Part shown: positions 27,121-63,551 of the stretch, piece by piece | Layout of the letters: every line of letters starts with the position of its first letter | Position numbering within the stretch: the stretch's first letter is position 1 | Virus record (IMG/VR): IMGVR_UViG_3300029258_002750 | Location: 62,001-126,000 of that record | Strand: one strand, 5' to 3' | Length of the DNA: 64,000 bases | Position numbers and translations under genes: made by a program | Notes under the pieces: model-generated | Database searches by the model: none | Told to the model about the DNA's origin: nothing | The model's input: the letters and a program-made list of their open reading frames with translations, nothing else

Positions 27121-27663
27121 ATGCTGATCACCGAGCTGGGACCGTGGAACCTCAAGGACCACATGGAGGAGTCCCTCGTCGCCGTCAACGTGCTGGAGCG
27201 TGTCCGGTGCCCAGAGTGCGATCAGCGAGCGCGGGTCGGCTGGAAGCGGACAGGCACGGAGCTGGTCTCGACCGAGTTCTACTGTGTGGACTGCGGCTAC
27301 CTGGCTACCTTCGGGGGCACATTCTCGCTAGATACGCAGTGTCCGTCCGGTGTGCCGTTCTCGGATCACGTTGATGGGATGGCGATGATGGTACAGGCGA
27401 CTCTCTCCGACGCGCGGCAAGGCCAGTCGGCCGTGGACAAGCTCGCGAAGATCGCCTACGACGACATGGTCGCGAAGCTCAAGCCTCTCATCCTGCGCCA
27501 GGACTCGCTCGAGAAGGCGGTCGAGGAGTTGGCGCAGCGCTGCCACGCGGCGCACCACGTACACAGCACGCACATCGACAACTGGCGCGATTGCTGGAAG
27601 CCGGAGTGCGGGCGGATGAGGAGGCTCATGGAAGCCCGGATAGAGGTCGAAGGAGGAGAGTGA
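27121..27663 (+). CDS. Zn-ribbon protein, paralogous to upstream gene
   Basis: CPEC...CVDC; HAAHH...W.DC....C; carries SAVDKLAKIA. Confidence 0.55.
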   Translation: MLITELGPWNLKDHMEESLVAVNVLERVRCPECDQRARVGWKRTGTELVSTEFYCVDCGYLATFGGTFSLDTQCPSGVPFSDHVDGMAMMVQATLSDARQGQSAVDKLAKIAYDDMVAKLKPLILRQDSLEKAVEELAQRCHAAHHVHSTHIDNWRDCWKPECGRMRRLMEARIEVEGGE

Positions 27664-28175
27664 TGCTCATCACGTGTGCCCAGTGCGGTAACGATATCCC
27701 GATGACGAGGGACCTGCTCCAGAAGATGGAGGAGGCGGTGCGGCTCGATCACCCGATCTACTGTCCGGCGAAGGACTGCGACCGCCAGATCGGATCGGCC
27801 ACGCTTCGGTCGATCCTCTCCCGGGTCGCGGCCAAGCGTCGCCAGCCGAAGGTGAATCCCAAGGCGGTGAAGCAGAAGTCGGCCAAGGCGCTCGGCGGGG
27901 CCGGTATTCTCACGCAGCGAGACCTGGTCGAGCTGTCCGCAGGGGCGAAGCGAGTCGCCGACATGATGGGCGACGGGCTCTGGTACGAGGCTGACGAGAT
28001 CCGCACGGCGGCTGGGGAGAACGGGCGCCCGGCGAGCGAGGGGCTCCGGCGGCTCCGAGAGCTGCGCGACCTGCCTGGCATCGTGGTCGACAAGATGAAG
28101 AAGCCGGGCGCGTCGCGGATCTGGCTGTACCGGCTGCGGCGCGTTGCGAAGACGAAGGCGGGCGCCGGTGCCTGA
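27663..28175 (+). CDS. Zn-ribbon plus winged-HTH protein
   Basis: CAQC...CPAKDC; VADMMGDGLWYEADEI...SEGLRRLRELRD. Confidence 0.55.
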   Translation: MLITCAQCGNDIPMTRDLLQKMEEAVRLDHPIYCPAKDCDRQIGSATLRSILSRVAAKRRQPKVNPKAVKQKSAKALGGAGILTQRDLVELSAGAKRVADMMGDGLWYEADEIRTAAGENGRPASEGLRRLRELRDLPGIVVDKMKKPGASRIWLYRLRRVAKTKAGAGA

Positions 28176-28581
28176 CGAGCCTCTCCAGATCAGCGTGAGC
28201 TACCCGATGGACGGTCTGCTGAACGCGAACGGCCGGGTCTACCCGCCCGAGCTGTTCAAGGAGGCGATGGAGAAGGCTGCGCGAGAGGGGAAGCTCAAGG
28301 TCGACATCGGTGGCACCCAGGAGCCCTGGCTGAAGGGCAAGCCGATCACGCTCGGCAACAAGCGGTTCGTCGACCCCAAGATGCAGATCGAGAGCATGGA
28401 CATGGGACCAGACGGCGAGCTACAGGCGACGATCCGTGTCGAGGAGCAGGCCGGGGCGGTGGATCAGCTGGCGGCGGTAGCCCGCGACGATGAAGATGTC
28501 CTCGATCGATGCCGTGACGCCGGTCTGGGCAGCTCGTCGAAGTCCACGAAGGTGTCGGAGGGCGACGGCCAGACGCGCTGA
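28168..28581 (+). CDS. Degenerate T4 gp21-like prohead protease fragment
   Basis: LNANGRVYPPELFKEAM matches the gp21-family N-x-NGRxYP motif; catalytic GELxHP and SSR motifs not seen. Confidence 0.45.
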   Translation: MPDEPLQISVSYPMDGLLNANGRVYPPELFKEAMEKAAREGKLKVDIGGTQEPWLKGKPITLGNKRFVDPKMQIESMDMGPDGELQATIRVEEQAGAVDQLAAVARDDEDVLDRCRDAGLGSSSKSTKVSEGDGQTR

Positions 28582-29321
28582 AGGTTGCCGCCGAGCGAGG
28601 CTGCGAGCAGGAGGTAGGAACGCCCGTTGATCTGGACGTGGTAGACGATCTCCCCCGGGGCGCATCTCCGAGCGTTGCGGTAGCCCAGCGGTGGGCAGCG
28701 GCCGGTGGCGGCTAGCGCCGTGTTGAGTACCTCGTCCACTATCTCGAGGCGCCGTCGTAGGCGATCGACTCGGTCTCGCGCCGCATCGTACTCCACGCCG
28801 AGTTCGATTTCGTCTGGTCGCGGAAGGCACGCGAGACGATCGATCGCGTTCTCCGGGTCTCGTTCCGTGTGCTCGAACCACTCGTCGATGTCGTAGCTCT
28901 CCTGGTTGCCGTGCTCGTCCCACTTCGTGAACTGCTCTTGTCCTGTGCCTGACCACTTACGATGGAAGATGCGGCCGATCTTCTTCGAGCGCTCGCGAAC
29001 CTCTCCGAACGTCGGAATAGCCTTCTCGTGCAGGACGCGCAGGATGCGCCAGCGAAGGGCCTCGATCGCGCGGATGTCGGTGAGCTTGTCGCGACGGACG
29101 ATCCAGGCGGTGTTGTAACCGTGCTTCTCGATGCAGACGTACCAGCGCTCGAGCGGGTGTCTCCAGATTCGCCGGTGCTTGGGTGGGTAGACCCAGCCGT
29201 CCGCGTCCAGCTCGTAGTCGTAGATGCCGCGTGACATCGAGTAGACGGAGCCATCGTCGCGGATGCCGCCAACGAAGGTGTAGAGCGCGATCTTCTTGTC
29301 GCGCTTCTCGTTCAGATTCAT
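28464..29321 (-). CDS. Hypothetical protein
   Basis: 285-aa ORF with GGGTAGAAC-N6-ATG start. Confidence 0.6.
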   Translation of the reverse strand: MNLNEKRDKKIALYTFVGGIRDDGSVYSMSRGIYDYELDADGWVYPPKHRRIWRHPLERWYVCIEKHGYNTAWIVRRDKLTDIRAIEALRWRILRVLHEKAIPTFGEVRERSKKIGRIFHRKWSGTGQEQFTKWDEHGNQESYDIDEWFEHTERDPENAIDRLACLPRPDEIELGVEYDAARDRVDRLRRRLEIVDEVLNTALAATGRCPPLGYRNARRCAPGEIVYHVQINGRSYLLLAASLGGNLQRVWPSPSDTFVDFDELPRPASRHRSRTSSSSRATAAS

Positions 29322-33477: not shown

Positions 33478-33932
33478 AGGTTGTTGAGCGCGCACCACAG
33501 CTCGCGCAGGGTCGCCCAGCGCTTCTTGCCGTCCAGCTTGATGCGCACCTTCGCCTCGTGGAGCTTGTGGAGACGGCGCTTGTAGGTGAGCACGATGTCG
33601 GAGTCTTGGGCCGGAGCGTGCTTCCAGGTGATCTGCACACAGCCGGTCACGTAGCTGACCGAGCCGGAGCAGTCGCCGTGCAGAGCACCATCCTCGCTGA
33701 CGTCGCAGCAGGCCATCTCCGGTTTCACGTGCCCGGCCAGCGCGCCCAGCTGGCTCACGGCGTCTGGCGGCATGACGCGGATGAACACGGAGCCCGGGAC
33801 GATCGGGCCGCGTATCGCGATCGAGTAGTTCGTCGTCGCGTGGTCGCCCTTCCCGATCGACATCCGGCGGTCTTCGGTCTTCGGGAACTCGTCCCACCGA
33901 TCGTCGCTCCAGTCGCTAGCGCTCATCGGCAA
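33474..33932 (-). CDS. Protein with a virion-type beta module (PIVPGSV...GSVSYVTG...APA...IVLTY)
   Basis: Motif recalls insertion modules of tail sheath/baseplate proteins. Confidence 0.4.
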   Translation of the reverse strand: MPMSASDWSDDRWDEFPKTEDRRMSIGKGDHATTNYSIAIRGPIVPGSVFIRVMPPDAVSQLGALAGHVKPEMACCDVSEDGALHGDCSGSVSYVTGCVQITWKHAPAQDSDIVLTYKRRLHKLHEAKVRIKLDGKKRWATLRELWCALNNL

Positions 33933-34194
33933 GACTCCCGAGAGCCGTGATTGCGCAGGGTGCGACCGGCTCCCAGTTGCGCGTCATGAACCATTCGAGC
34001 AGATCGGGCTTGTTCGTCTCCAGCCAGATGGTACTGCGGACTGTCTGGGGTGCAGAGCGAGAACCACCTGGAGGCGCCCGCGTGCGTCGGCAGGTGCTCT
34101 TTTGCCTGCGCCTCGTAGTCGAGGGGGTGCCGCTTCTCATCCCTGTAGGACAGCGCAGACCCGACGCGCGAGAGCCGGATGGCCTCGTGCAGCG

Positions 34195-34533
34195 TCACGC
34201 CTTCACCTGGCACTCGCAGCCCTTCGCCACGAGGATGCGACGCTGATCCGCGAGTGTGGTGATGCGCGACGGCGGTGGTACCTGCTCGTCCCAGTACGGC
34301 AAGCACGCGAGCGGTGATTTGTGATTCCACCCGCGCCGGACCATCTCCTCGGCCTGCTGCTGGTGGCGAACCGCCAGGTGTTGGAGACGCCCCTCCCAGC
34401 GCTTGACCTCTGGATGATGGCGGTAGCCTTGCCTGTCCTCGGTCAGGATCGTCCAGATCGCGTGCAGCTCGCGGTGCTCACCGAGCAGGTGCTTGCGGCA
34501 GAGAACGCGAACCGGCAGATCCCAGATCCTCAC
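34195..34533 (-). CDS. Pyrimidine-dimer DNA glycosylase (DenV/Pyr_excise-like family)
   Basis: MRIWD...LCRKHLLGEHRELH...GYRHHPEVKRW..L..RH...EMVRRG.NHKSPL. Confidence 0.8.
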   Translation of the reverse strand: MRIWDLPVRVLCRKHLLGEHRELHAIWTILTEDRQGYRHHPEVKRWEGRLQHLAVRHQQQAEEMVRRGWNHKSPLACLPYWDEQVPPPSRITTLADQRRILVAKGCECQVKA

Positions 34534-35207
34534 TCGAAGCTCTCGTCAGCGATGGCGGCGAGGTGATCGACGGCCGATGGGAACACGTCCGGCTGGATGT
34601 CGGCCAGCACACGGGCGGGCATCCTGCCCTCGGCGGCGGCAATCGTGAGAAGTGCGTCGAGGAGTTTCTCCTGCGACTCCCAGGGGGGTCCGCTGATGTT
34701 CACCTCCATGTTCGTCTTGATGTGCGTGTAGTAGCCGGTGTAGGTACCGCGCTGCCACGTGGCCTCGTCATCCCTGCAACGATCGGCTAGGTACTGCTCG
34801 AACGGTTCCGTCCTGAGGAGCATGAGTTCGTGGGGAAGGATGGGCGCTAGGAAGAGGCGGACGACCTGCTCCAGCCGCTCGATTCGCTCGACGAGCTTCT
34901 CGAACTCCTCGACAAACTCGCGCCCCGGCCCAGAGATCACTGTCGCCGCTTGCCCTTCTTGCCTCGCTTCGCCTGCCGCTCCCGGCGGGCCTCCATCCGC
35001 TCAAGGCGCTGGGCCTCAAGCGTCGTGTTGTGAATGAAGAGATCGACGCCGCCCTCCTCGACTTCGATGCCCTCGAGCGCGCCCAGCATGTTCTGAAGCA
35101 GCGCCCCCGGATCGTCGGGGTCAGCTGGCGCGGACGGCGGCATCGTGCTCGCGACCTCGATCTTCGGGGTCGGTCCCTTCGGCTTCTTCTTGGGCGGCAG
35201 GTTGTCG

Positions 35208-35462
35208 TCAGGCGGTGGCGGTCCGGTGAAGAACTCGGCTTCCTTCATTCGGCTTCCTCTTTCTCTCTAGCCGAGCGAGCTGGTCGATGGCCGAGACCAG
35301 TCGAACCCTGCCAGCCCAGCACTTCATCATCTTGGGCTCGCCAATGGCCGCGTCGTGAAGCCAGAACACGACCTCCTCCGTGAGCGGCCAGTAGCAGTAG
35401 ACCTTGCCGGTGCGGCCAGCGTAGCGGCCCTCGATGATGTGGATCTCGTCGCCCGGTTCCAT
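35208..35462 (-). CDS. KOW/SH3-like protein with C-terminal tag
   Basis: PGDEIHIIEGRYAGRTGKV; SAIDQLARL; leaderless promoter at 35469-35477. Confidence 0.6.
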   Translation of the reverse strand: MEPGDEIHIIEGRYAGRTGKVYCYWPLTEEVVFWLHDAAIGEPKMMKCWAGRVRLVSAIDQLARLERKRKPNEGSRVLHRTATA

Positions 35463-35471
35463 ACCCTAGTT

Positions 35472-36593
35472 CTACCCGTCGTCTTGGTCGTTCATCTCGA
35501 GCATCTTGGTCTCGGCGGGCGGGGCCAGGATCGGCCCGGCCGCCTCCCAGAGCGTCTTCTGGTCGAGGCTCTGCTGGCCGATGAACTGGATCGCGGCCGA
35601 CTCCATGATGCCAGTGATCTCCTCGCGCGCCTGGTCCACGGTGAACGCGGCGTTCGCGGCCGAGTGTTCGACGGCCCGTGCCACGCGCTCGGCGAACTCG
35701 CGGAGCTGGGTCTTGCGCGCGGGCTTGCCGCTCTCGGCCTGCGCCTCCAGCTCCTCGGCGATCTCGCGTAGCGCGTCGGCCTGCTCGCCCAGGCGGTGCT
35801 TGAGGCGCTTCTCCATGCGCGCGCGGATGGGCTCGGGCGGGCGAACGCGCTCGCGCAGGAGGACCGCGTCGTCGGTCACACTCCAGTAGGACGAAAGCGT
35901 GCACGGGGTGTGCGAGTTGCCGACCAGCGCCATTGCGAACTGCTCGGGGCTCATCGTGACCTCGCAGATGCGGCGGCCGTCCGGGTTCGTGATGGTGATG
36001 TGCACCACGGACGAGTGGTAGACCTTCGACCCGTTGAGCGCTTGACCGGGTGGCCCGGCCGACGCGATGCCGATGTAGATCGTGGACCGGCTCTTGTCGA
36101 TGTCGAAGTCGTCCGACTGCTTGTGAAGGCCGTCCTTGGCCGAGTCGATGGCGTCGGTGCCGGGGTGCGTCTTGGCGCGCGCCTCCTCGAAGATGCGCTC
36201 CTTCTCGCCTTTCGCGCCAGTCATCTTTCGGTGCGCGTGGATGGCCGCCGCGTAGTCGAGGATCTCCTCCTCGCTGATGAAGGACCCCTGATCGGCCATC
36301 CGCTTGAGGTGCGGCTTCGGCCGCTTGGAGAGGATCTCCTCCTTCTTGCGATCGTAGACGCGGCCTCTGCTCTCCTTGGAGAAGCCACCGTGCGAGACGA
36401 GGAAGCCGTCGCCGGGGATGTAGTGCGTCTCTCCGTGCGCTGGGCCACGGATGGTGAGCACGACGTCAGCGTGATCGTGCGTGTCGGGAATCTCGTCGGC
36501 GCCGGTGATGCCAGCTGGGTGGCGCTGGTCGTCGTCGAAGGTCTTGGACGGTACGCGCTGGACCTTCTTCTTCTTCCTCTTCTTGCGGCTCAT
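35472..36593 (-). CDS. Hypothetical 373-aa protein
   Basis: GGAGG-like RBS; stop codon is part of the downstream GGGTAGAAC promoter. Confidence 0.6.
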   Translation of the reverse strand: MSRKKRKKKKVQRVPSKTFDDDQRHPAGITGADEIPDTHDHADVVLTIRGPAHGETHYIPGDGFLVSHGGFSKESRGRVYDRKKEEILSKRPKPHLKRMADQGSFISEEEILDYAAAIHAHRKMTGAKGEKERIFEEARAKTHPGTDAIDSAKDGLHKQSDDFDIDKSRSTIYIGIASAGPPGQALNGSKVYHSSVVHITITNPDGRRICEVTMSPEQFAMALVGNSHTPCTLSSYWSVTDDAVLLRERVRPPEPIRARMEKRLKHRLGEQADALREIAEELEAQAESGKPARKTQLREFAERVARAVEHSAANAAFTVDQAREEITGIMESAAIQFIGQQSLDQKTLWEAAGPILAPPAETKMLEMNDQDDG

Positions 36594-36773
36594 GTTGCCC
36601 TCCCTAGCACGTGTAGAGGACGAACGACGGCTCGGTGTAGACGCGTTCGACCGGGTCGTTCGAGGGGTCGTAGCCCTCGATGAAGGTGCCCGCCTTGACC
36701 TGTTCTCGGAGCAGCTCGCGCGCCTGATCTTCGTTCTCGGCCAGGCAGGCGAATCCGTCCCATTCGTAGAGGT

Positions 36774-53093: not shown

Positions 53094-56000
53094 CGGCCAG
53101 TTCCGCGAGCATGTCCACGGCGCTTGGCGCGCAACGGTCGCAGCACCAAGAATTGCGCAGGATCCATCCTCGCCGCCGCGCGGCGTCGAGCAGTCGGGCT
53201 ACCGCATCATGGAACGCGCCTTCTTCCTCCGGGTAGTCGTAGAACTCCGATAGGCCGAGCCGCGCCAAGCACTTACGGCACTCGATCATTGGCTGGACCT
53301 GGTGACTGCTACTCACGAACCAGATCCCCCAGTTGATCGACAGCGGGCGCGGGCCGGATGTAGTTGAAGTTGCCTGGTGCGTAGCCGACCTTGTGGTGCT
53401 TCTCTCCCGTCTCGACGATGCGGAAGTCGAACTTGCTGCCGTTGATTCGGAGGATGATGGCCTTGTGCCACGTGTCGCTGAAGTCTCGCTTCGCTCGGTC
53501 CCACAACCGGACCTCGATGCTGTCGCCCGGCCGGTAGAAGACGCCCTTGTTCTTCTTCCGCGCTTGCGCGTGCCGCCACTTCTTCCGCTTACCCATACGT
53601 CAGCTCCCCGAGCCGCGTGATCGCGTCGTCGCAGGGACGAAGGGACGTCACGTGGTAGGAGCGCGATCGACCGTGGCGGCGCGGCTGGTTCGGGTAGATC
53701 CACCGGACGAAGACGCGTTGAGGGTCCTTGCGCTCGTAGCGTTGGACGACCCCGTGTTGGTGACGGTGCCGCATCGCGACCGTGTTGATGATCACGCGCT
53801 CGCCGACCTCCGGCCTCCACCTATCCACTGAGGAACTCCATCAGGATTGCGGCCAGCACGACGCCTGCCACGACGCCCCACAGGAACGCTTTCGTTCGCC
53901 CGCGCGCGTACCCCGCGTTGTAGGCGGCCGGGTGCTTCGCCTGAAGGTGCCAGTGCACCTGGTCGATAGCCTGGGTCGGCCAGAACAGGAAGCAGCCGCG
54001 CGGCTTGAACTCGGGCAGGTCTTCGATCTCCTTCTTGTAGTCTTCCTGTGGATCGTTCACAGGAGATCCTCTGCGAGCGAGCCGAGCGCGTCGATGGCTT
54101 TGCCGTCTTCGATGAGTTTGTCGCGATAGCGCAGCTTCGCCTGTATCTCGCTGATCATCCGCGTGAAGCGCGCCGCCGAGGCCGCCGAGAGCCCACACAG
54201 ATTGAGACAGATGTGCGTGTCGCTGTCCTCCGGCAGCGAGAGTTGGGCGTTGCACTCGGGGCAGCGCCACCGGGAGAGCGCGCCGTCGAGAAGCAGCACG
54301 TCGCTCATCTCGTCGTCCCAGCGCGCGGGCTTCATGTTGACGTGGGGGACGCCTCCGATCGTGCAGTAGCCGATGATCATCGGTCGGTCTCCCATCCCAT
54401 CAGCGGCTCCCACTCTTGGGTCCGGTAGTCCACGAGCCATTTGCAGCCGTAGCAGATGATGAAGAAGCTGCCGACGCGATCCGTTTCGCCCTCGTGCTTG
54501 CACTCCCGGAAGCGCGCGAGACTCTCCTCGAACTTCCCGAGGTTCGCCAGCGTGTCGATCGCGCTGCTCTTCGTGTTCTTCGCCCTGGCGCGCCAGTAGT
54601 CCTCGCCGCTCTTGATCGTGTCGTGTTCAGCCATCGCTCTCGTCCTCTTCCGCGTCCTCGAGCACGCGCGCGATGTCGCCCAGGAGCGTGATCGTGTCCA
54701 TCTTCATGAGGAACTGCGGGCCGAGCATCGTGGTCTTCCCGCGCTGTGGGCCGGTCGTCCAGCGAACGTGGACCGACCAGCAGCCGCCGTACTTGGAGCA
54801 CGACTCGACGCGGGCCGTGAACCGGCCCGCCTCACCGCCGTCGCCGTCGCCCATCGCGACGCGGAAGGTCTGGCCCTTCTTGAACGGTGGATTGTCGCCG
54901 TAGATGAGCGCGCGCCGAGCTGCCTCGTCGTCGCGAGCTTTCTCAACCTCGCGCTTCATCCGCTTCAGCACGGCGTCCGGGTCGTCGCTGGAGCTGTGCC
55001 TATACACAGATCCCCTCCGCATCGAAGAACTCGTTGTGCGCGCCCAGCCAGCTGAGGTGGTTGGTCGTGGTCGCGAAGCCCATGCACCAGCCGTTCGGCG
55101 GAACGGACGGGTGCCTGGCATCGCCTGTGTGCTTGCCGTGCTCGTAGGTCAGGCGGCGGCACTTCCCCCAGTTGGAGCACGAGCCGGGGATGAAGCTGAT
55201 GCAGGTCCGACAGGTCGGCAGCACGCGGAACTTGGCGTCTCGCAGAGCTTGGAGCTTGTTCGGATCAGGCATCGTCGTCTTCCAGCAGCGTCACGTCGTC
55301 AGCCCAGAACCAGCCGATGTCGCCCTCGTCCTCGGAGAACCTGACGAGGTACATCTTGTCGGTCGAGTTGTAGTCAACGACGTCGCCGACGACGGCAACG
55401 CCGTCCATCTCGACGCGCACTCGCCCTCTCATGGGTCACCAGTCCTGCTAGCTGCTCGATCGCACCGGCCAGCTCGACGTTGCAGATGCCCTTGTCGATC
55501 TTCTGCCTGCCGACGCGCACGCGGCAGAAGTACCATGGCTCCTCCCCTACCAGGAAGAACTCGAAGATCCGACCGCGCAGTCGGCTTCCGCCCAGCGTCT
55601 CGAACTCGACCAGGGACCCGATGCTGAGGCCCCGGCTCTCCTTGATCAGCGCGACCTCGGAAGAGTCGGCGGAGAGCTTGATGCGGCGGGGTTGCTTCAT
55701 GCTCCCGTTCTTCATGCTCCCGTTCTACCCGGGATCGGCGACGATCTCTCCGAGCAGTTCCACGGCCGAGAGCGGCTCGATCTCGAACTGCGTGACCCAG
55801 AACCGGACCGCCTCGCCGTCGAGAACGACGTCGGAACGGATGTAGTAGGCCGGGCTGCTCCCGTCGCTCCATCGGTGAGGGTCGATGGCCTCGATGGTCC
55901 CTCGCCTCGGCCCGTCCTCAATGTGGTAGATCACCCGGTCGCCGATCCTCACAGCAGTGCCCCGAGCCGCGTGACCGCGTCGGCCTCGACCCAGTAGTCG

Positions 56001-57910
56001 TCCAAACTGACGAACGTCTGGATCTTCAGCCGCAAGTCCCGCGCGATCCACCACAAGGTCTCGTCGCATATCGCGTCTGGATCTCTCCCGCCGTGGTACT
56101 GGCCGAAGCACTCCTCGACCGTAGCCGGGCGCGTCAGTTGGACGAGTCTGCGGCCGGTTCCCACGAGCAGCAGTCCTGGTTCCGGCTCGATCACGCGGCC
56201 ACCAGACTACCCAGCTGATCGACCGCGTCGAGCGCCTCGACCGCGCGCACGTCCACGAACGTGCAGACCTCCATCAGGTCGTCGTCCCAGGCAATGTCGA
56301 GGGAGCGGGGCCGCTTGTCCTTGTCCCACGAGCGGATGCACTTGATCGTTCCTGCGCGCGCGAGACCCCGGGTCGTGCGAACACGGACGCCTGTCGCGAG
56401 CGCGAGCTTCATCGCTGGCTCGCGATCAGCCGGATCAAACTGTTGGTCAGCCACTCGAATTCGGTCTGGCCGCTCTCCATCCACTGCTTGGCCACGCGGC
56501 GTATCTCGTTGCAGCGCGCCTGGGCCTGCGAGAACTCGCCGGGGTCGGACGCGCGGCCGACGATGTTCGCGGCCTGCTGCTTGTGCGCGGCCACGTGGTG
56601 GCCGATGCACGCGGGAGTGATTTGGACCGAGTCCCAGAAGAGCCCCCACGTGAGCTGATCGACTCCCGGCTCGGTCGGCATGGCCCAGACCTCGGGCGCG
56701 ACCAGGAGCATGGTGAGTCGAATGTCCAGCTCGCGGTTCTTCATCACTATCGTTCTACCCCGCCTGGCTATCTGTCCATCTCGTAGAGAGAAAGGGTGAG
56801 CAGCTCGAAGCCCTCCTCGAGCCGGTCGTACTCGGTGCGCCGATCCTCGCGGAACTCCTCCTCGACCTCCCTCCAGGCTGCCAGGAGGCCCGGGTCGACC
56901 ACGGGAAGGGCCGTCAGGCCGCCGGAGAGCGTCTCAGGCGAACGATCGTCGGCCGGATGGGTAACGAGACCTCGCTCGATCAAACCGGCCGTCTCCGGGG
57001 CCGAGAGGAGCTTGTCGAACCTCCGGGGGTCCGGGGGCGGGCTCCTATCGAGCCGGAAGGGCCGACCGATCAGGGCCAGGTCGTTGCGGGACAAGGCGTC
57101 TCGCAGGTCCAGCTCGCGCAAGTCGTTGATTCCCAGGATGTTCACTTCTGCCTCCTCGCCAGGTCTGCCATCAGGTCGATGGCGGTGTTCTCTCTCAGAA
57201 TGAGGCCCGGGAGCCACCCGGTCGCGCTCGGGCAGTCGGGGTCTCGGACCTCGATAAGACCGTCGCCCACTTCGCCCGTGCCGCGCAGCACCAGGCCCGC
57301 AGACCAATAGGGCGGGTCGAGGGCCGGGTCTCCATCTTCGGCCCACCAGTCGGCGGTCAGGGTGTAGTCGGTCACGCTACTCCGCCGTCGAGACGTAGTG
57401 GGGAGCGAGCAGGTCGCGCGCGGCGTCGAAGAGAAACCGGGTCGCGGCGAGCCGCGTCTCCGGCGTGGCCGACTCCTTGGAGCCGGACGGGTACTTGACC
57501 GAGCGGTACTCCTCGTATCGCTCGGGCGCGGCGGCCCTCAGCAGCGAGCGGAACTGCTCGCGGGCCTGGGCGCAGATCACCGCGCCGACCGTGATCGGCT
57601 GGATTCCGTCATCGGTGATCTTGTCGTTGACGATTTGGTTCAGATCGAACTGGCTCATGGGTTCCCTTCCTAGCGCAGCACCACAACGCTGCGCGTGCTC
57701 TCGAAGTCGTCCTCCCTGACCTCTTCCTCGACCACGACATCGCAGCCGAAGTAGTCGGACCGGCCGACCTGCTCCACCGACACGCTGCGCACCTCGGGCG
57801 CGATCGTGGTGTGGCAGTAGTCCCGCGCGTCGTGTCCGAAGTGGATCGTGGCGTCGGCGGGCATTGTCTTGAGCAGGTTGATCAGTTCGTTGCGGGTCAT
57901 GGTTGTCTCC

Positions 57911-57947
57911 TTCCGTCTCTCTCAACAACACCGACTCCTGTTCTCAC
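57911..57947 (-). promoter_or_regulatory. Conserved leader element, copy 3 of 3
   Basis: gtgagaac-aggagtcg-gtgttgttgagagagacggaagga upstream of ATG 57900. Confidence 0.55.
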
Positions 57948-57980
57948 GACCTTTTCCTAAGTGGCCGTGAGGCCAGGGGT

Positions 57981-58078
57981 TGGTGGGTCTCGATTCCGGT
58001 AGGGTCCGGCCCTCATCGGGGCTGGTTGGGGGGAAGCCGAGCGTGGTGGGTCTCGGTTCCTGTAGGGACCCCGCCTCA
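57981..58078. repeat. 35-bp imperfect direct repeat, two copies 63 bp apart
   Basis: tggtgggtctcgattccggtagggtccggccctca versus tggtgggtctcggttcctgtagggaccccgcctca. Confidence 0.7.
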
Positions 58079-58492
58079 CGCGTGACCTCGCTCTCGTACG
58101 AGCTTGCCGACCAGCTCGCGGTCGGGGTTTTCGCCGAGCTGGCGCATGACTGCTCGCCACGTCGGCCCGTGTTGGACCGGCCCACGACCGTTCATCTTCG
58201 CGTGAGCGTCGGCGATCAGGTGCGCGACCTCGTGAACGACCAGGTGGTAGCGCTCGTCGAGACTCAGCTGGTTCCACCAGTAGCGGTAGAGCTTGATCCG
58301 GCCGATCCAGTGGACGCACGGGATCACGCGCACGTCCAGCTGTGCGCTTCCCATCACATCCCACGCGTCCGGGTCAGGGTCGAAGAACTGGATGTCGAGC
58401 CCGATGTGGCCGAGCTTGTAGAGACCGAGCGCGGCGCGCGCGATCTCGGCGGCCCACCGGACCTGCTCGGTCCAGTGCTCGTGGTTTCTCAT
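58076..58492 (-). CDS. SprT-like zinc metalloprotease
   Basis: VVHEVAH...HGPTWRAVMRQLG. Confidence 0.8.
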   Translation of the reverse strand: MRNHEHWTEQVRWAAEIARAALGLYKLGHIGLDIQFFDPDPDAWDVMGSAQLDVRVIPCVHWIGRIKLYRYWWNQLSLDERYHLVVHEVAHLIADAHAKMNGRGPVQHGPTWRAVMRQLGENPDRELVGKLVRERGHA

Positions 58493-58516
58493 GTTGGGTT
58501 ACGGAAGAAGTCGGCC

Positions 58517-58640
58517 GGATCTTTCGGCTCTATCCAGTAACGAAGCGGGGCGAGAAAGCCTTAGAGGCTCCCTCGCCCTGTCTGCCTCGTCCGCCCGGAT
58601 CTCTTGCCTCATACCCAGTAACGAATCGGCGTGAGGAAGT
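58517..58640. repeat. About 42-bp imperfect direct repeat, period about 80 bp, intergenic
   Basis: ggatct...ccagtaacgaa...gagaaag / ggatct...ccagtaacgaa...gaggaag. Confidence 0.6.
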
Positions 58641-58666
58641 CTTACGGCTCGGCCGGAATTTTCTTC

Positions 58667-59314
58667 TTAGCGCCTACCGCAGCAGCGCTTGTGCTTCTTG
58701 CCGCTGCCGCACCAGCAGGGGTCGTTGCGGCCGATCTTGTTGAAGCCGCGCCGGAAGGTGCGAACCGTGCGGAAGAACCTCTCGGCGTGCCCCTCCGATG
58801 CCATCGCCTGCTGCCAGCCGAGCGAGGTGAGCGAGAGCCGAGCGTGGAACGACCGGAACGACTCGGAGTGGCCCTCGGTCGGTGACAGCTCGTTGATGGT
58901 CTCGACGACGTTCTTGTCCTCGTGAGCGTGAAGCGCGCGCGCGAGGGCCAGGTCGAGCGCGATCATCGCCGGTGCGTCGGTCTCCACCATCGTGTTCGGC
59001 TGCTCGCCATCCTTGACCACCACGAGCGCGGCGGCGAGCGCGCGCGTGCTGTCGAGCGATGGCGGAGTCCGCTTGACGGGCTGCGTGAAGTGACCCTCTA
59101 TGCGGCGGTGCCGGTCCGGGTCACCGCAGACGTCGTCGATCTCACGCACGGCCGACTCGATCGCGGTCGGGTGCAGCTCTAGTATGGTCTCCAGAACCTC
59201 GGCCGCGAGCCGGTCGATCTCGACATAGAAGCTCTTCGTGTCGCAGTGGAAGCCGTGGCGAGCCGCGTTACGGATCAGCGCTTTGACATCGTCGCTTGGC
59301 TCTTCGTAGGCCAT
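58667..59314 (-). CDS. SEC-C motif protein
   Basis: KIGRNDPCWCGSGKKHKRCCG. Confidence 0.85.
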   Translation of the reverse strand: MAYEEPSDDVKALIRNAARHGFHCDTKSFYVEIDRLAAEVLETILELHPTAIESAVREIDDVCGDPDRHRRIEGHFTQPVKRTPPSLDSTRALAAALVVVKDGEQPNTMVETDAPAMIALDLALARALHAHEDKNVVETINELSPTEGHSESFRSFHARLSLTSLGWQQAMASEGHAERFFRTVRTFRRGFNKIGRNDPCWCGSGKKHKRCCGRR

Positions 59315-61020
59315 GCCCTTGTTCTACCTGTCCTTCACCTCCATCCTCCTGGCTACGTTGGCGAGTCGGTCGATCGCGGTCACGCCAGCTGACTCGGACA
59401 GGGCATCGACGCGGTGACGAAACTGATTCGCCAGCCGCTTGTCTCCTCGGCGTCGCGCCCAGCTCTCCGCTCGCTTGCACAGCTCGCGCAGCCGCTTGAA
59501 GCGCGGCAGGTCGAAGCTGACCATGTTCACGTGGTCGGGCGAGAGCTTCACTGCCCACCCGTTCATGTTCTTGGCGCCGAACGCGAGCGCGCGGTGCACG
59601 GCCCATACGGGGTTCACGACATTCAGCTCGTGGTTCTTGCCAACGATCTTCGGGTTCCAGTCCTTAGCGATCTGGTACGTCTCGCGGTCGAGGTGGAGCA
59701 GGATCACACAGTGGCGCTGAGTGAGGGTTGTAGTACGCGGTGGTGTGGGGGTGCCCATCGCTCACTTCCGGTTAGTGGCGATGGTCTCTCTCAGCTCTGG
59801 TAGCCCGATCTTTGGCGGGTCGACGGTCGCGTGATACTCAAGAAGCGCCAGGCACAAGGATACGAGGCCGGTGGCGATCTCGTCCTCGTCGGCCATTCGT
59901 CCGCCGATAGTGCCCAGTTGGTTGCGGAGCGCGTTGATCTCGCGGCGATTCCCTTCGTCGAGTTTCACGAGGCACTTTGTCGAGTGATCGAGCGGCTTGC
60001 CGACGCGCTCGACCTTGCCGCCCTTGGCCCATCGTCGCCACGTTGCCAGGGAGCACTTGCGCTCGTGCCGACCGTTTTGAACCGAGTAGACGACCGTTCC
60101 CAGGGCCGTCACGTACTCGACGCAGCGCTCGTTCTTGCCCACCCGCACGACATCGAGGAGCTGCGGGGTCACACGAGGGTCGCGGTCGGGCATGGTTACC
60201 TCCGACCGCGTTTCTACCTCAATCTACCGACACATCCCCCACTTCTTCCCAGACGAGCGCGCCGAGCCGATCGACGGCGCTAAGTGACGCCGCGAAGGCG
60301 GCTCGGAGCGCTTCCCAGGCGGCCTCCCGTCGCTTGGGTCGCCTGATCCTGCCATCCCACAGGTCGGCGCCGACATCGAATCTCGGCTCCTCGGACCGGC
60401 GCTTCACGTTGATCGCGACGTGGGGGAGTACGATCCGGGCGATACCCGCGCTGGTGGGCTTGTTGTTCAAGTAGGTCCAGCTGTGCCAGACGACCGTGGT
60501 TCCGTGTGGGTCGGCGACCGCGACTGCGAGCTGCGTCCAGTAGGCGGTGGCCTCGTAACGCTGCCTGCTGGATGTTCGCGAACAGGCGGCCAGCGCCGAC
60601 CACTTCCGGTTGCGCTTGATCTTCTTCCCTCGCTTCTTCTGTGCCCGCTGGCCGAGCTTCATCGGGTCGAACCGATCGCACTCGGCGATCCTGTGTGCCG
60701 ACCGGGAGCCCGGCCCGCTCGTGCGTTGGTCCGGCGGCGTGTCGAGGTAGATGACCTTGATCATGCCAGCTCCCCCAGCTTGTCGATCACGTTCTTCGGC
60801 TCGACCGGCTCCCAGTTCTTCCAGTTGCCGAACTCGGCCTCCTCGCGAGTCGTGGAGAACAGCGCGTCATGCCCGACCGCCGAACGAGTCCGGCACCAGC
60901 GCACGGCATGGCGCGCGGTCTCCCACGAGCCGCGAACGAAGTAGTAGTTCCACGTCCCGTAAGCCTTGGTGCGTCGGATGACCAGGCCGATCCTGCTCTC
61001 GGCTAGCGCCTCGTCCAGCG

Positions 61021-61614
61021 TCACTTCGGCCTTCCGCAGCATCGTTTGTGCTTCTTCCCAGAACCACAGGCGCAGCGCTCGTTGCGGCCCTGCTTGGAGT
61101 AGAAGTTCCGGTAGGTTCCAGCTGACTTCCTGACTATGTCGAAGTGCCCATCGGTCACGTCGCCCTGATTCAGGGCGGCGGCCGTCGCGCATACCCTAGT
61201 CCACCACTCAGTGAAGGACCACTTGTGGTCCTCGTTGGGTGCGATAGCGTTCACACGCCGTTCGCATTCGGCTCCCGTACCGAACGCCGCCTGAACAGCG
61301 TGGGCCACTACGGCGAAGTGGGTAGTGCTCATTGGTCTGCTGGCTACCGTGTCGTGCACGTTGCAGAGCGCGTCCAGATGCTCCCACACGTCAGACTCGT
61401 CGATGTCGAATTCGGTGAACTGGTGGAGCTTCTCTCGTACAGCCTGTCTTGTCTCGTCCTCGGCGTTGCGCAGGAGCGCCTGGAGCATCGCCGACGCTGA
61501 CGGGTCGATCTCGACATCCCACACGTTCTCGGATCGATCGAGATGGAAGCACAGTCGTGCGGCGGCCCGTCGTACCTGTCGGTCGATGTCCCTCATGCCG
61601 AACTCTCTCGACAA
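61021..61614 (-). CDS. SEC-C motif protein
   Basis: QGRNERCACGSGKKHKRCCG. Confidence 0.8.
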   Translation of the reverse strand: MSREFGMRDIDRQVRRAAARLCFHLDRSENVWDVEIDPSASAMLQALLRNAEDETRQAVREKLHQFTEFDIDESDVWEHLDALCNVHDTVASRPMSTTHFAVVAHAVQAAFGTGAECERRVNAIAPNEDHKWSFTEWWTRVCATAAALNQGDVTDGHFDIVRKSAGTYRNFYSKQGRNERCACGSGKKHKRCCGRPK

Positions 61615-61963
61615 ACGCAGACGAGCACGACGCCGACCATTGCGGTGATTCCCCAGAAGATGATTGGGATGTCCGGTGCGGCTTTCATGCAGAGTCCGAG
61701 GACGATGGAGAGTAGGAGCAGCTCGCTCCAGAATCGAATCTCGAGCCTAATGTGTGTCAGCACGAGATGTCTCCCAGTCGATCGACGGCCGGGATCAGGT
61801 TCTCTAGCGCGCGGATGGCCCGCTTGATCTCGTCCACGTTGCGGAAGTGGATGCAGCCGCGCGACGCTGTACCCGCCGGTCTGCCCCTGAAGTCGTAGAT
61901 CGAGTCCTTGATGTGGAGCCAGCCGATGACGTCCGGCTCGTTCGGCGCGGGCCGTGTGTAGAT

Positions 61964-62024
61964 CTCGGCCTCAGAAGGGGAACTCACTTGGAAGGGGAAC
62001 TCGGCCTCAGAAGGGGAACTCACT
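61964..62024. repeat. 25-bp direct repeat with 36-bp period (in-frame duplication)
   Basis: ctcggcctcagaaggggaactcact at 61964 and 62000, giving VSSPSEAE twice in ORF 61757-62044. Confidence 0.8.
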
Positions 62025-63551
62025 CGGATCGATCCCTGGTTCAATGTCGTTCGCGACCTCGGCCAGTCCGACGACGGCGCCCTTGTGGTCGAGGATCTGC
62101 TCCCGCATCTTGTCTCGGTAGACCTCTCCCGCGTACGCGCGAGCAGTGTTGTCGAGGCTCTCCCACGTGCTCCTGTGCTGGATCGAGCAGAAGATGAGCA
62201 CGCGCTTCTTCGGTCCCTTTCGGAACATGCCGCCCATCTCCAGCACCGTCGAGACGTGGGAGGCGTTGTGTGCTACCCAGCCGGGCGGCAGGTCGCCCCG
62301 GAAGTAGTCCTTGGCGTCCCGCGCCTGCTTGTGGATCGCAGCCTCGGCCTTCATCTTCGTTCCGCACAGTTCGCACGTGAAGGTGACATCGATGCCGCTC
62401 ACGTGCTCTCTCCGACACTCGCCAGCCGATCGATCGCCGAGCACGAGTCGAGCGGGGCCTCGGCCCACTCGTACTGGCAGGTCCGACAGGAGCGGTGCAT
62501 GTGCTCCTCGGCGGAGAGCCTGCCTTCCATCAGGCGATTGCCGATCGTCGCCGGTACTGACAGCCCGCTCTTCAGCCTCTTCTTCAAGAACGGCTGTGCC
62601 TTGACCCACACCACGTGGATGTCGCGCTGGCCGCACTTGGGGCAGGAGCGATCGTGTCGGTAAGGCTTCAGCTCGCTCACGCGTTCGCCTTGTAGTGCAG
62701 GTCGCCGATCCACATCCCGCAGACACAGCAGCAGCCGACGTCACCGGCCCAGTGATCGGTGCGTAGGACGGTGGTGAGTTCCCCCTCCACCTCAGCCTGC
62801 TTCGGCTCGTGGTCCTTGCACCAGACCGTGCTCTTCTCATCGAACCAGGCGATAACCTCGTCCATCAGTCCATCCCACTTGGAGCGGTCGATCTCTTCGC
62901 CTGCTCCTCGGCGTAGATCCGATTCGCGTAGTCCGCGTAGGCGGAGAAGATCTCCCTGTCATCTCCCCAACTGGCGATCTCCTTTCGGCCCCTCTCGGTG
63001 CAGTGACCGGCCGAGATGAGACCGAGACGCGACAGGGAGATGACCAGCTCGCGGCCCTCTTGGGTATCGGTCACGCCGACGCTGAACCAGTGGTAGTAGT
63101 AGCGCAGGAGCATCAGCTTTTGCTCTTGCGTCAGGTCCGAACCGGCCACTTCTTACTCCTCTGGGATCGGTCCCAGTCGCAGCTTCTTGGAAACGGATAC
63201 CATTCGCTCGTGGGTGACCGATCCCGCGCACGTCTTGCAGAGAGGGCTACAGCTGTTACCCCACCAGTAGCAGGTGTGCTTGCCGCAGATCACGCAGACC
63301 TCGACGACTTCGTCGCACGGCTGTTCTCTGGTCACTGGTACGGGCATCAGTCCAGCCACTTCTCGCACCCGCGTTTCATGTTCTCCAGCGCCTCGTACTG
63401 GGCTTCGGTCACGTGCCGCCGGTCCTCGATCCAGGCGCGGATGTCCCGCACTTTCTCCTCGACCGACCCGGCGAACTCCTCGGCCTTCTCGGGCAGCTCG
63501 TTGTCGATCATGTCGAGGATCTCATCGGCGATCTCGAGCGCGCTCTCCCAG

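Follow-up and report, generated by a model that had tools for sequence, protein, structure and literature searches.

Why would about half of the small accessory proteins of an uncultivated 275-kb phage and of its relatives, otherwise unrelated to one another, carry the same roughly 16-residue peptide near their C-terminus? The question was raised by a first-pass annotation of a 64,000-nt window (positions 62,001 to 126,000 of IMG/VR record IMGVR_UViG_3300029258_002750), which counted about 40 ORFs carrying a common motif of about 10 residues, nearly always within the last 25 or so residues, and inferred a phage-wide address tag that docks on one hub, or alternatively a shared degron. The observation itself holds: all 22 peptides that it listed are present at the stop codons given, and the motif [S/D]-A-[V/I]-[D/E/T]-x-L-[G/A]-x-[L/I/V]-[A/V] occurs about 39 times in the window, 36 copies being terminal and 3 internal or N-terminal. 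A strict regular expression, x[AV][IV][DET]xL[AG]x[ILV]x, gives 37 hits in six frames, of which 32 are in minus-strand ORFs between 33.9 and 62.4 kb, and 29 of those lie within 33 residues of the stop; nearly all copies lie within 35 residues of a stop codon. A PSSM built from the copies scores at least 12 in the three minus frames 8, 10 and 14 times, against 1, 1 and 0 times in the plus frames.

To determine whether such a motif could arise by composition alone, we examined the last 40 residues of the 72 called minus-block genes, where the simple regular expression hits 24 times, compared with twice in the bodies of the same genes (5,737 aa) and twice in all other genes (10,870 aa). Two thousand residue shuffles of the tails give a mean of 0.03 hits and a maximum of 2, and in 405 kb of bacterial control DNA (80 nrdJ loci, mean GC 58%) there is 1 hit anywhere and 0 near a stop. 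The tag is absent from the plus-strand block that encodes NrdJ, a 2,086-aa protein and other large proteins. With our gene calls, 0 of 39 genes outside the minus block carry a terminal tag, against 28-31 of 75 inside it, although two plus-strand copies are found in other ORFs. The copies are listed below with their PSSM scores; L005, L006, L012 and L013 denote related metagenomic phages.

33916..62713, minus strand: array of about 78 small genes, of which about 34-36 end in the tag; the array continues past the window end to contig position ~134.3 kb
27427..27456, plus strand: internal copy SAVDKLAKIA, 68 aa before the stop of ORF 27121-27663; 16.1
28453..28482, plus strand: copy GAVDQLAAVA, 32 aa before the stop of ORF 28144-28581; 24.7
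33928..33957, minus strand: tag CAITALGSLA, 3 aa from stop 33916; 23.8; kept in the L006 orthologue
34548..34577, minus strand: tag SAVDHLAAIA, 5 aa from stop 34530; 26.8; kept in 3 orthologues
35265..35294, minus strand: tag SAIDQLARLE, 18 aa from stop 35208; 24.6; orthologue in L013
37196..37225, minus strand: tag DAITRLGNVI on a 256-aa protein, 7 aa from stop 37172; 24.8; kept in L006 and L013
37960..37989, minus strand: tag DVITRMGSLL on the WGR-domain protein 37939-38277 (Pfam WGR, 9.9e-13)
38991..39020, minus strand: tag SAIEHLGELA on RNase HI 38979-39530 (Pfam RNase_H)
42119..42148, minus strand: tag HAVDRLAAVV followed by a conserved 28-aa basic tail, stop 42032; 24.5; tag and tail conserved in L006 and L013
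42870..42899, minus strand: tag DAVTRLGDIF, 33 aa from stop 42768; 24.1; identical in L006
43207..43236, minus strand: internal copy SAVDALADLH, 109 aa before stop 42877, followed by a Cys/His-rich region; 20.9; internal position conserved in L005 and L006
47579..47608, minus strand: tag PAVDQLAEVI, stop 47561; 24.1
47944..47973, minus strand: tag SAIDALGNIA, 18 aa from stop 47887; 27.0
49174..49203, minus strand: tag GVIDQLAAIV, 17 aa from stop 49120; 23.3
49875..49904, minus strand: tag SAVDRLADIA, 11 aa from stop 49839; 28.7
50206..50235, minus strand: tag SVVDRLAEVG, 23 aa from stop 50134; 23.3
50516..50545, minus strand: tag SAVDQLADLA, 2 aa from stop 50507; 29.2
51176..51205, minus strand: tag SAIDRLGDLV on a protein with two N-terminal TM helices (51152-51577; hydropathy 2.13 at residue 6, then an RRRR cluster); 29.8
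51593..51622, minus strand: tag SAVERLGELA, 1 aa from stop 51587; 21.3
51945..51974, minus strand: tag SAVVRLGELY, 6 aa from stop 51924; 16.3
52267..52296, minus strand: tag SAVERLGEIA, 4 aa from stop 52252; 26.1
53095..53124, minus strand: tag SAVDMLAELA on a CxxC-rich 67-aa protein, stop 53086; 27.2
53318..53347, minus strand: tag PAVDQLGDLV, stop 53309; 27.4
53598..53627, minus strand: tag DAITRLGELT, stop 53589; 22.8
54072..54101, minus strand: tag KAIDALGSLA, stop 54057; 22.6
54536..54565, minus strand: N-terminal copy SAIDTLANLG, about residue 17 of the 85-aa protein 54377-54634, 52 aa before the stop; 16.1
54669..54698, minus strand: tag DTITLLGDIA, 13 aa from stop 54627; 15.9
55437..55466, minus strand: tag GAIEQLAGLV, followed by a 20-aa Arg-rich tail that overlaps the next gene; 20.0
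55740..55769, minus strand: tag SAVELLGEIV, stop 55725; 21.8
55952..55981, minus strand: tag DAVTRLGALL, directly at stop 55949; 16.9
56200..56229, minus strand: tag DAVDQLGSLV, stop 56191; 25.8
57157..57186, minus strand: tag TAIDLMADLA, stop 57142; 15.2
59351..59380, minus strand: tag TAIDRLANVA, stop 59324; 25.7
60252..60281, minus strand: tag SAVDRLGALV, stop 60219; 27.3
60764..60793, minus strand: tag NVIDKLGELA, directly at stop 60761; 11.9
61763..61792, minus strand: tag PAVDRLGDIS, stop 61757; 15.0; the L012 orthologue has 9 of 10 residues identical
62052..62081, minus strand: weak and uncertain copy GAVVGLAEVA, 14 aa from stop 62007; 10.6
62411..62440, minus strand: tag SAIDRLASVG, stop 62399; 25.3

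Is it the peptide or the DNA that is conserved? In 31 aligned copies, codon positions 1 and 2 carry 1-2 bits and position 3 carries 0.02-0.5 bits, and synonymous codon choice in the core columns fits genome usage in 14 of 16 tests. Against the closest relative, the tag codons show 30 synonymous and 14 non-synonymous differences, whereas the 8 codons upstream show 19 and 21, and RNAalifold predicts 0 pairs. Selection therefore acts on the peptide, as the first-pass annotation had proposed. Its fold labels are only partly verified: the RNase H and WGR assignments are confirmed and one carrier has two N-terminal TM helices, but the SH3-like label rests on one sub-threshold Pfam hit and the DUF1040-like label was not reproduced. 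The carriers are nevertheless unrelated, because no BLASTP pair was found among 34 trimmed proteins and only 4 phmmer pairs among 58.

The tag is also portable. In the RNase H family it is C-terminal in 6 members, sits in an N-proximal loop before strand 1 in 5 others that lack the C-terminal copy, and is absent in about 20, and N-terminal, internal and tandem copies occur. Tag identity among orthologues is 0.57-0.90 against 0.25-0.46 for the protein bodies in 6 of 7 families, and all 20 WGR homologues keep the tag. The first-pass annotation underestimated its scope. Walking along the 275,101-bp source contig raised the count to 64 copies in the ~103 kb that was read, and the tag is shared by a clade of uncultivated large phages: the related L005, L006/L016, L009, L012 and L013 use it, and more distant contigs use a variant.

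The predicted amphipathic helix is supported by three observations. The hydrophobic moment is 0.53 at 100 degrees, against 0.29 after order-shuffling and 0.19 at 160 degrees. Positions 1 and 4 covary as a capping box (S/T with D/E 60 times, D with T/S 22 times, mixed 4 times; Fisher p = 3e-16), although this statistic, like that of the orthologues, uses related sequences, and the copies are not independent. AlphaFold2 predicts a strand at 165-168 and a helix at 172-180 in the RNase HI carrier, and a helix at 98-111 in the WGR carrier, the helices having a pLDDT of 56-78 against 94-98 for the domains. The module of about 16 residues would then consist of a weak lead-in (E, hydrophobic, x, P/E, hydrophobic), which AlphaFold2 draws as a short strand or bridge, followed by an N-capped three-turn helix, [S/D]-A-[V/I]-[D/E/T]-x-L-[G/A]-x-[L/I/V]-[A/V]-[R/D/E]. 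The apolar face (A2, V/I3, L6, G/A7, L/I/V9, A/V10) is the conserved part, and the polar face is free to vary.

What might such a helix do? Our preferred reading, held with no more than moderate confidence, is that it plugs into a groove on one conserved receptor, and in this way about half of the phage's small accessory proteins would be brought to the same machine or place in the cytoplasm of the infected cell. The carriers are probably early or host-takeover proteins and DNA-metabolism proteins, including RNase HI, a WGR nick-sensor-like protein and, in a relative, a pyrimidine-dimer glycosylase, although their expression time is inferred only from gene size and layout. The analysis establishes that the motif exists, is selected as a peptide, sits on unrelated proteins, is gained, lost and relocated, is conserved across a phage clade and is predicted to be helical; that it binds in trans, that there is a single receptor and where that receptor is are inferred, and the identifiable carriers hint at the DNA replication, repair or transcription factory. 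The first-pass interpretation is thus supported in part, since docking on a hub is not shown. About 90 proteins of this phage scanned with Pfam, PHROGs or NCBIfam, in the roughly 37% of the genome that was read, include no obvious peptide-binding hub, and no receptor was identified. More than 60 clients for one groove is also unusually many.

Among the alternatives, a turnover tag, in which the helix is a degron read by a host or phage protease or adaptor (Lon, FtsH, or ClpXP with an adaptor), so that a whole class of accessory proteins is short-lived or cleared at one stage of infection, is unlikely but remains open. The tag is predominantly C-terminal (the median is 4.5 residues from the end, and 37 of 50 copies are within 8 residues), has a non-polar face, and is carried by small accessory proteins in two divergent arrays; the FtsH degron of E. 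coli LpxC is a non-polar C-terminal tail, and several lambda regulators are protease substrates. However, the last residues are not conserved, between 0 and 33 residues can follow, and internal, N-terminal and loop-inserted copies exist, which does not fit degrons that need a free C-terminal carboxylate and weakens the alternative of a classical C-terminal degron. Housekeeping-type enzymes such as RNase H carry the tag, and no protease was found next to the arrays in this phage, a papain-like peptidase occurring only in relative L012. Somewhat less likely, though also open, is a helix that caps or stabilises small domains in cis, or drives homo- or hetero-oligomerisation among the tagged proteins, without a dedicated receptor. 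AlphaFold2 draws the lead-in of the RNase H copy as a strand pairing with the RNase H domain with fair confidence (pLDDT about 78), and the module could therefore pack on its own domain; the helix has intermediate confidence, many carriers end in a hydrophobic-x-E-P strand-like lead-in, and tandem tags in one protein would suit multivalent self-association. Against this, the same 10 residues with a conserved apolar face are unlikely to fit many different folds in cis, tagless RNase H and cellular WGR homologues fold without the tag, it can move to another segment of the RNase H chain, and its pLDDT is well below that of the domains.

A virion-loading signal that binds the capsid interior, scaffold or portal, so that the proteins are packaged and injected with the DNA, is doubtful but not excluded. 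Such a signal would resemble encapsulin cargo peptides or the T4 capsid targeting sequence: many unrelated proteins share a terminal peptide, as in encapsulin and T4 head-internal proteins, large phages package many proteins, and injected accessory proteins would act before transcription starts. Yet the tagged genes form separate divergent arrays of small genes away from the large plus-strand block, which carries no tags, one carrier is a membrane protein, the sequence is unlike the encapsulin consensus or the T4 signal, and no processing site is conserved between domain and tag. Equally doubtful is descent from a single small gene by duplication, with the tag as the only segment still recognisable. 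The tandem arrays of 70-120-aa genes, one 3-member paralogue group and one further pair, and two tag subclasses (S..D and D..T) that could mark two lineages are compatible with this view, but the tag is attached to RNase HI, WGR and a pyrimidine-dimer glycosylase, which have tagless relatives, it is relocated within RNase H, and of 58 carriers at least 54 groups have no detectable similarity; even if true, common descent would not explain why only these residues are kept. A nucleic-acid element read through by the upstream gene (a promoter, a start-associated sequence, a ribosome standby or re-initiation site, an RNA structure or a recombination linker at gene boundaries) is refuted for the core motif. 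In most cases the tag does lie just upstream of the next gene's start, the residue after the core, when Arg, uses the rare AGG/AGA codons in 8 of 11 cases, probably because of the next gene's ribosome-binding site, and a genuine DNA motif, CCGGGTAGAAC, sits at some of these boundaries. However, in addition to the three-base periodicity, the codon usage, the synonymous excess and the absence of consensus RNA structure, hits occur only in the coding frame, the distance to the stop and to the next start varies from 0 to about 130 nt, and the tag also occurs inside proteins.

No described system matches the tag in Pfam, NCBIfam, PHROGs, PDB sequences or the literature searched, but several are reminiscent of it. 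C-terminal degrons, such as the ssrA tag for ClpXP and the non-polar tail of LpxC for FtsH, are likewise short, largely non-polar and portable between proteins, but must be at the very end of the chain. The T4 capsid targeting sequence is a phage-encoded short terminal peptide that directs several unrelated head-internal proteins to one destination; it is N-terminal, is removed by the prohead protease and serves a handful of late proteins, unlike this C-terminal or internal tag on non-structural gene arrays, which has no conserved cleavage site. In the PRANC/F-box-like C-terminal motif of poxvirus ankyrin proteins, many paralogous or diverse viral proteins share a helical motif that docks on one host machine while their variable part selects targets, but that motif is longer and belongs to a eukaryotic ubiquitin-ligase context, and there is no evidence for a degradation machine here. 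Encapsulation peptides of bacterial microcompartments and cargo-loading peptides of encapsulins address unrelated cargo to one protein shell through a terminal peptide on a short linker, the microcompartment version also being a short amphipathic helix with paired hydrophobic positions. However, no shell gene (BMC, EutN or encapsulin families) was found in the part of the genome scanned, the sequence is unlike the encapsulin consensus, and here the carriers are phage accessory proteins and are several-fold more numerous. In the dockerin-cohesin system of cellulosomes, dozens of unrelated proteins in one genome carry the same C-terminal docking module for one scaffold, but dockerin is a folded calcium-binding domain of about 70 residues that acts outside the cell, whereas this tag is about 16 residues and cytoplasmic, and no scaffold with repeated receptor domains was seen. 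Sliding-clamp binding motifs (bacterial QL[SD]LF / QLxLxL, the PIP box, and C-terminal clamp-binding peptides of T4 proteins) are short, usually terminal, and shared by unrelated proteins that all dock in one hydrophobic pocket of a hub, and the recognisable carriers here are nucleic-acid enzymes. The consensus differs, with no invariant Q and no aromatic pair, the tag is predicted to be helical rather than extended, and its more than 60 carriers, mostly ORFans, are far more than any known clamp clientele.

All 22 peptides listed in the first-pass annotation are present in the window, which is 65% G+C, is identical to positions 62,001-126,000 of a 275,101-bp IMG/VR contig (UViG_3300029258_002750) and so comes from an uncultivated large ("jumbo") phage. 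The regular expression x[AV][IV][DET]xL[AG]x[ILV]x gives 37 six-frame hits, of which 32 are in minus-strand ORFs between 33.9 and 62.4 kb, and 29 of those lie within 33 residues of the stop. A position matrix built from the copies scores ≥12 in the three minus-strand frames 8, 10 and 14 times, compared with 1, 1 and 0 times in the plus-strand frames, and we count 39 copies in the window. In the last 40 residues of the 72 called genes of the minus block, the bare regular expression hits 24 times, whereas it hits twice in the bodies of the same proteins and twice in all other genes; two thousand shuffles of the tails give a mean of 0.03 hits and at most 2. In 405 kb of bacterial DNA (mean GC 58%) that had been collected for another purpose, no hit lies near a stop. 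The observation of a shared peptide near the C-terminus of many small phage proteins is therefore confirmed.

Is it the peptide or the nucleic acid that is conserved? When the DNA of 31 copies was aligned in register, information content was 1-2 bits at first and second codon positions of the conserved columns and 0.02-0.5 bits at third positions, measured against the codon-position background. The synonymous codons used for each conserved residue match genome-wide usage: Ala, Leu at position 6, Gly, Val and Ile all give p > 0.2, and the mild exceptions are Arg at position 5 and Leu at position 9. The residue after the core is different, because when it is Arg it is encoded by the rare AGG/AGA codons in 8 of 11 cases, which we attribute to the purine-rich ribosome-binding site of the next gene. 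RNAalifold finds no pair at all in the 31 copies with flanks. Between orthologous tags of this phage and its closest relative, 46 core codons are identical, 30 differ synonymously and 14 non-synonymously (mostly V/I or A/T), whereas the eight codons upstream show 32, 19 and 21, respectively. The distance from the core to the stop ranges from 0 to 33 residues, so there is no fixed spacing to the next start. Neither of two outcomes set in advance as grounds for rejecting the motif, a score no better than that of shuffled C-termini and conservation at the DNA level irrespective of frame, was observed.

A DNA element with the opposite behavior does occur in the same window. The motif CCGGGTAGAAC is found 12 times (at most 1 mismatch) against 0.87 expected and is co-oriented with the genes. 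In 5 cases it lies exactly 6 nt before an ATG that opens a gene, and CCGGGTAGAAC-N6-ATG fits the definition of a start-associated sequence, being conserved as nucleotides at fixed spacing to the start codon. It looks like such a sequence, or like a -10-like TAGAAC promoter for leaderless mRNAs that is perhaps read by the phage sigma factor. It overlaps upstream stop codons and explains the "...DPG*" endings after some tags. Its sites, together with other sequence features that accompany the tagged genes, are:

18596-18606 (+), 26226-26236 (-), 29328-29338 (-), 35469-35479 (-), 38976-38986 (-), 49836-49846 (-), 51584-51594 (-), 55722-55732 (-) and 56752-56762 (-): occurrences of CCGGGTAGAAC in the window
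9240-9290 of L015 (a further stretch of the same contig): the divergent region, where CCGGGTAGAAC forms a perfect inverted repeat
42032-42148, 55374-55466, 42768-42899 and 50134-50235: tags followed by 20-33-residue Arg/Lys-rich tails; the tail after 42119-42148 is conserved in two relatives, and the tail after 55437-55466 overlaps the start of the next gene
61964-62028: a tandem repeat of a 17-19-nt unit, about 3.3 copies, inside the coding region between two tagged genes

A sigma-70 promoter scan of the divergent region found nothing, and the window contains no tRNA genes.

The carriers are unrelated to each other. With the tag trimmed off, 34 window proteins give no BLASTP pair at E < 0.01, and among 58 tagged proteins of this phage phmmer finds only one three-member family and one further pair. 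Pfam recognizes only WGR (37939-38277) and RNase H (38979-39530) among 20 carriers, while PHROGs and NCBIfam recognize nothing. AlphaFold2 models built with family alignments, followed by Foldseek, confirm the RNase HI and WGR folds. The RNase H family is the clearest test of portability. Six members carry the tag after the last helix of the domain; five others (family members P0004, P0006, P0015, P0016 and P0028) lack it there but carry the same motif, for example DAVTALGEVV or TAIDQLGELA, as an insertion in the loop before the first strand; and about twenty end right after the domain with no tag. In the close relative L006, and likewise in L007 and L008, the RNase H gene is complete but untagged, and it is followed by an overlapping ORF (P0041) whose last 43 residues repeat the RNase H C-terminus with the tag (L006 4529-5083 and 5043-5564), which looks like an insertion with a duplicated 3' end of the gene. 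The window also holds an N-terminal copy (54536-54565) and an internal copy (43207-43236) whose internal position is conserved in two relatives, and outside the window one protein carries two tags. The pyrimidine-dimer glycosylase homolog carries the tag in L006 but only a decayed remnant in the window (34195-34533).

Reading further along the contig at four additional loci gave 35 + 7 + 15 + 7 = 64 terminal copies in the ~103 kb examined (contig 52-155 kb), only one of which lies in the 52-62 kb block of larger genes. The tagged genes form two divergently transcribed arrays of 70-120-aa genes around contig position 134.4 kb, plus further clusters near 151-154 kb. In the window, 28-31 of 75 called genes of the minus block carry a terminal tag, plus five tagged ORFs missed by our greedy gene caller, whereas none of 39 genes elsewhere in the window does. 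Five related metagenomic phages, found through RNase H homologs, use the same tag on many small genes, for example 15-18 of 52 genes in L012, a phage whose own RNase H is untagged. In the most distant of the five (L009, a 287.5-kb contig) the consensus has drifted to x-[V/I]-[V/I]-D-R-[I/L]-[A/S]-x-L. Relatives of the phage include ENA ERZ841185 NODE_1 (287,531 bp) and IMGVR_UViG_3300017971_000201. In seven ortholog families tag identity is 0.57-0.90 against 0.25-0.46 for the protein bodies, the exception being RNase H, where the tag comes and goes.

All 20 WGR homologs found in a set of 5.8 billion proteins keep E-I-D-V-I-T-R-L-G. A profile of WGR plus tag, searched against 1.84 billion representatives, finds 1,560 WGR proteins; among the best 150, only about 19 align through the tag, and all of these are small (92-133 aa), whereas cellular multidomain WGR proteins stop at the end of the domain. 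Contigs around three of those distant small WGR proteins (L102, L103 and L104; JGI 3300041081-83) show that they and their neighbors end in a related motif, [S/T]-[A/P]-L-[E/Q]-x-L-A, as in S-A-L-E-L-L-A-S, S-P-L-E-L-L-A-S and P-A-L-Q-Q-L-A-E, often followed by an acidic end. On the evidence of three short contigs only, and without statistical support, this suggests that the tagging principle may reach well beyond this clade. Other searches gave little. Megablast and tblastn against 50,697 phage records found no relative of the window or of the 713-aa protein, and the RNase H hits only distant Staphylococcus phages at 28% identity. A profile of eight more tightly aligned copies matched 89 stretches in IMG/VR, but only the query itself passed confirmation. 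A tag profile searched against PDB sequences gave only chance-level hits (E 0.5-1.3), NCBIfam, Pfam and PHROGs have nothing for the tag or for most carriers, and literature searches, including literal motif strings, found no match.

Fifty copies from this phage give an extended profile of E(-5), L/I/V(-4), R/E(-3), P/E(-2) and L/P/A(-1), each carrying at most 1 bit, followed by S/D(1), A(2), V/I(3), D/E/T(4), R/Q(5), L(6), A/G(7), E/A/D(8), L/I/V(9), A/V(10) and R/D/E(11). The hydrophobic moment of the core is 0.53 at 100 degrees, compared with 0.29 after shuffling residue order and 0.19 at 160 degrees, and net charge is 0 to -2. Positions 1 and 4 covary as a helix capping box: among 110 distinct copies, S or T at position 1 goes with D or E at position 4 in 60 copies, D at position 1 goes with T or S at position 4 in 22 copies, and only 4 copies are mixed (Fisher p = 3e-16). 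The D..T class also prefers Gly at position 7. These copies include orthologs, so the p-values overstate independence. AlphaFold2 predicts a short strand (165-168) and a helix (172-180) for the RNase H tag and a helix at 98-111 for the WGR tag, with pLDDT of 56-78 for these segments against 94-98 for the domains; the models were read at the level of secondary structure and pLDDT only, not of contacts between the tag and its own domain.

The genes identified in the window are a class II ribonucleotide reductase, a weak match to dNMP kinase, an RNA-polymerase alpha-CTD-like protein, an HAD "Swiss army knife" domain and a SprT-like protease. Details of some of these, and of other genes in and around the window, are:

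19916-22669 (+): class II ribonucleotide reductase (NrdJ); in the relative L013 the same gene carries an intein with a LAGLIDADG domain
25662-26204 (-): a 180-aa protein with a C-terminal domain like the RNA polymerase alpha-subunit CTD (PF03118, E 1.5e-5), conserved in a relative (L013 2351-2854, -)
7168-8055 (contig 59.2-60.1 kb), 6248-7171 and 3008-3739 of L098 (a stretch of the same contig upstream of the window): a sigma-70 region 2 protein, a ParB-N-like protein and a UDG-family glycosylase
51152-51577: a carrier with two N-terminal transmembrane helices followed by an Arg cluster, so that its tag should face the cytoplasm
58667-59314 (-), 61021-61596 (-) and 63552-63998 (-), with L015 334-990 (the same gene as 63552-63998, seen complete) and 6140-6748, and L005 (a related phage) 6641-7285: a second portable C-terminal module, in which four proteins of this phage and one of a relative end in a SEC-C zinc motif (Pfam PF02810, E 3.7e-9 and 1.2e-5), the motif by which SecA binds SecB and the ribosome

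The phage therefore probably redirects the host RNA polymerase. The nearest cellular NrdJ sequences (55-57% identity) are from Myxococcota/Polyangiales MAGs, although this is only a hint to the host phylum.

What might explain a conserved apolar helical face with a free polar face, under purifying selection stronger than that on the proteins carrying it, present on unrelated folds, as a rule once per protein but relocated within RNase H, tolerant of trailing residues and internal positions, and drifting in consensus from lineage to lineage? The simplest account, which we hold with moderate confidence, is a helix-in-groove docking motif that binds in trans to one conserved partner. The identifiable carriers are nucleic-acid enzymes, which points weakly to the replication, repair or transcription machinery as the destination. 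What the sequences themselves establish is a strongly non-random, portable and clade-wide tag, selected as a peptide, on more than 60 unrelated proteins of one phage, and predicted to be helical; binding in trans, a single receptor and its place in the cell are inferred from sequence alone, and any function is unproven. The proposal of the first-pass annotation, that the motif is an address tag through which many proteins dock on one hub, is thus only partly supported. No receptor was found among about 90 proteins scanned, with about 63% of the genome lying outside the sequence examined, and the 2,086-aa protein, considered as a possible repeat scaffold, has no Pfam hit and no tandem repeats.

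A degron is an unlikely alternative, weakened by the tolerance of position, and a helix that stabilizes its own protein or self-associates is somewhat less likely still, although it is kept alive by the strand that AlphaFold2 draws before the helix. A virion-loading signal and common descent of the carriers both seem improbable, the latter being contradicted by the RNase H, WGR and glycosylase cases, and a nucleic-acid element is very improbable, being contradicted by the free third codon positions, the ordinary codon usage, the lack of RNA structure and the excess of synonymous change. A membrane-targeting helix was dropped because the tag has a net charge of 0 to -2 and no basic face, and a ribosome-arrest peptide because nothing supports it and the tag is also found at internal positions.

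A more far-reaching possibility, less likely than not but with a substantial chance, is that the tag is a true linear zip code of a large clade of uncultivated phages and a new sorting or coupling system. It could be a sorting signal that concentrates about half of the accessory proteome in a phage-built compartment or replication factory, a bacterial-virus counterpart of a nuclear localization signal, or it could be an F-box-like handle that couples a library of variable target-binding domains to one host or phage machine. In either case receptor and tag would co-evolve across lineages, with SA[V/I]DxL[A/G] here, [V/I][V/I]DR[I/L]A in L009, and S[A/P]LExLA plus an acidic tail in more distant contigs. 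If the tag is a docking or sorting signal, it gives a single handle on dozens of phage proteins of unknown function, since one receptor would define where or with what they act, and the peptide could be used to send reporters or enzymes to the same destination or to pull the whole assembly down. It would show that large phages organize their accessory proteome with a linear address code. In nucleus-forming phages, by comparison, the import work that we could find reports dedicated import factors rather than a linear signal (PMC11087766; bioRxiv 10.64898/2026.09.21.753271), and searches so far have found surface-based licensing (PMC11087766). The tag also gives a sequence signature for recognizing this clade, and its accessory genes, in metagenomes.

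Shared terminal docking or targeting peptides are already known, and the tag departs from all of those examined except perhaps microcompartment encapsulation peptides. Sliding-clamp binding motifs (CBM / PIP box) have a conserved Gln followed by Leu and aromatic positions (QL[SD]LF, QLxLxL, Qxx[LIM]xx[FY][FY]), whereas the column before the invariant Leu of the tag is R 25, Q 12 and A 6 of 50 copies, and there is no aromatic column. Clamp clients are replication and repair proteins; RNase HI, WGR and, in L006, Pyr_excise carry the tag, while more than 50 carriers have no recognizable function. Like encapsulin cargo-loading peptides, the tag lies at the C-terminus of its carriers, with a median distance of 4.5 residues from the end, but its consensus is not the Gly/Ser/Leu-rich one of encapsulin cargo, and no encapsulin-family Pfam hit was found among the proteins scanned in the roughly 37% of the genome seen. 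The ssrA-like and non-polar C-terminal degrons need the very C-terminus, whereas 0-33 residues follow the tag core and internal and N-proximal copies exist. The T4-type capsid targeting sequence is N-terminal and is removed at an L/I-x-E site by the prohead protease, whereas the tag is C-terminal or internal and has no conserved L-x-E between domain and tag, the positions before the core being L/I 21 of 50, R/E, and P 12 / E 9. The C-terminal sorting signals LPXTG, PEP-CTERM, GlyGly-CTERM and MYXO-CTERM are followed by a transmembrane helix and a basic cluster and have curated NCBIfam models, but no carrier has a C-terminal hydrophobic segment and none gives an NCBIfam hit at E ≤ 1. Dockerin is a calcium-binding, duplicated-loop domain of about 70 residues (Pfam Dockerin_1), whereas the module here is about 16 residues and 20 carriers gave no Pfam hit to that domain. 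Microcompartment encapsulation peptides share with the tag an amphipathic helix at a terminus, joined by a linker; no BMC shell protein was found among the proteins scanned, but a shell is not excluded while most of the 275-kb genome lies outside that scan. In principle the tag would work like clamp-binding motifs, microcompartment encapsulation peptides, encapsulin cargo peptides, dockerins or the T4 capsid targeting sequence, in each of which many clients share one terminal plug for one socket.
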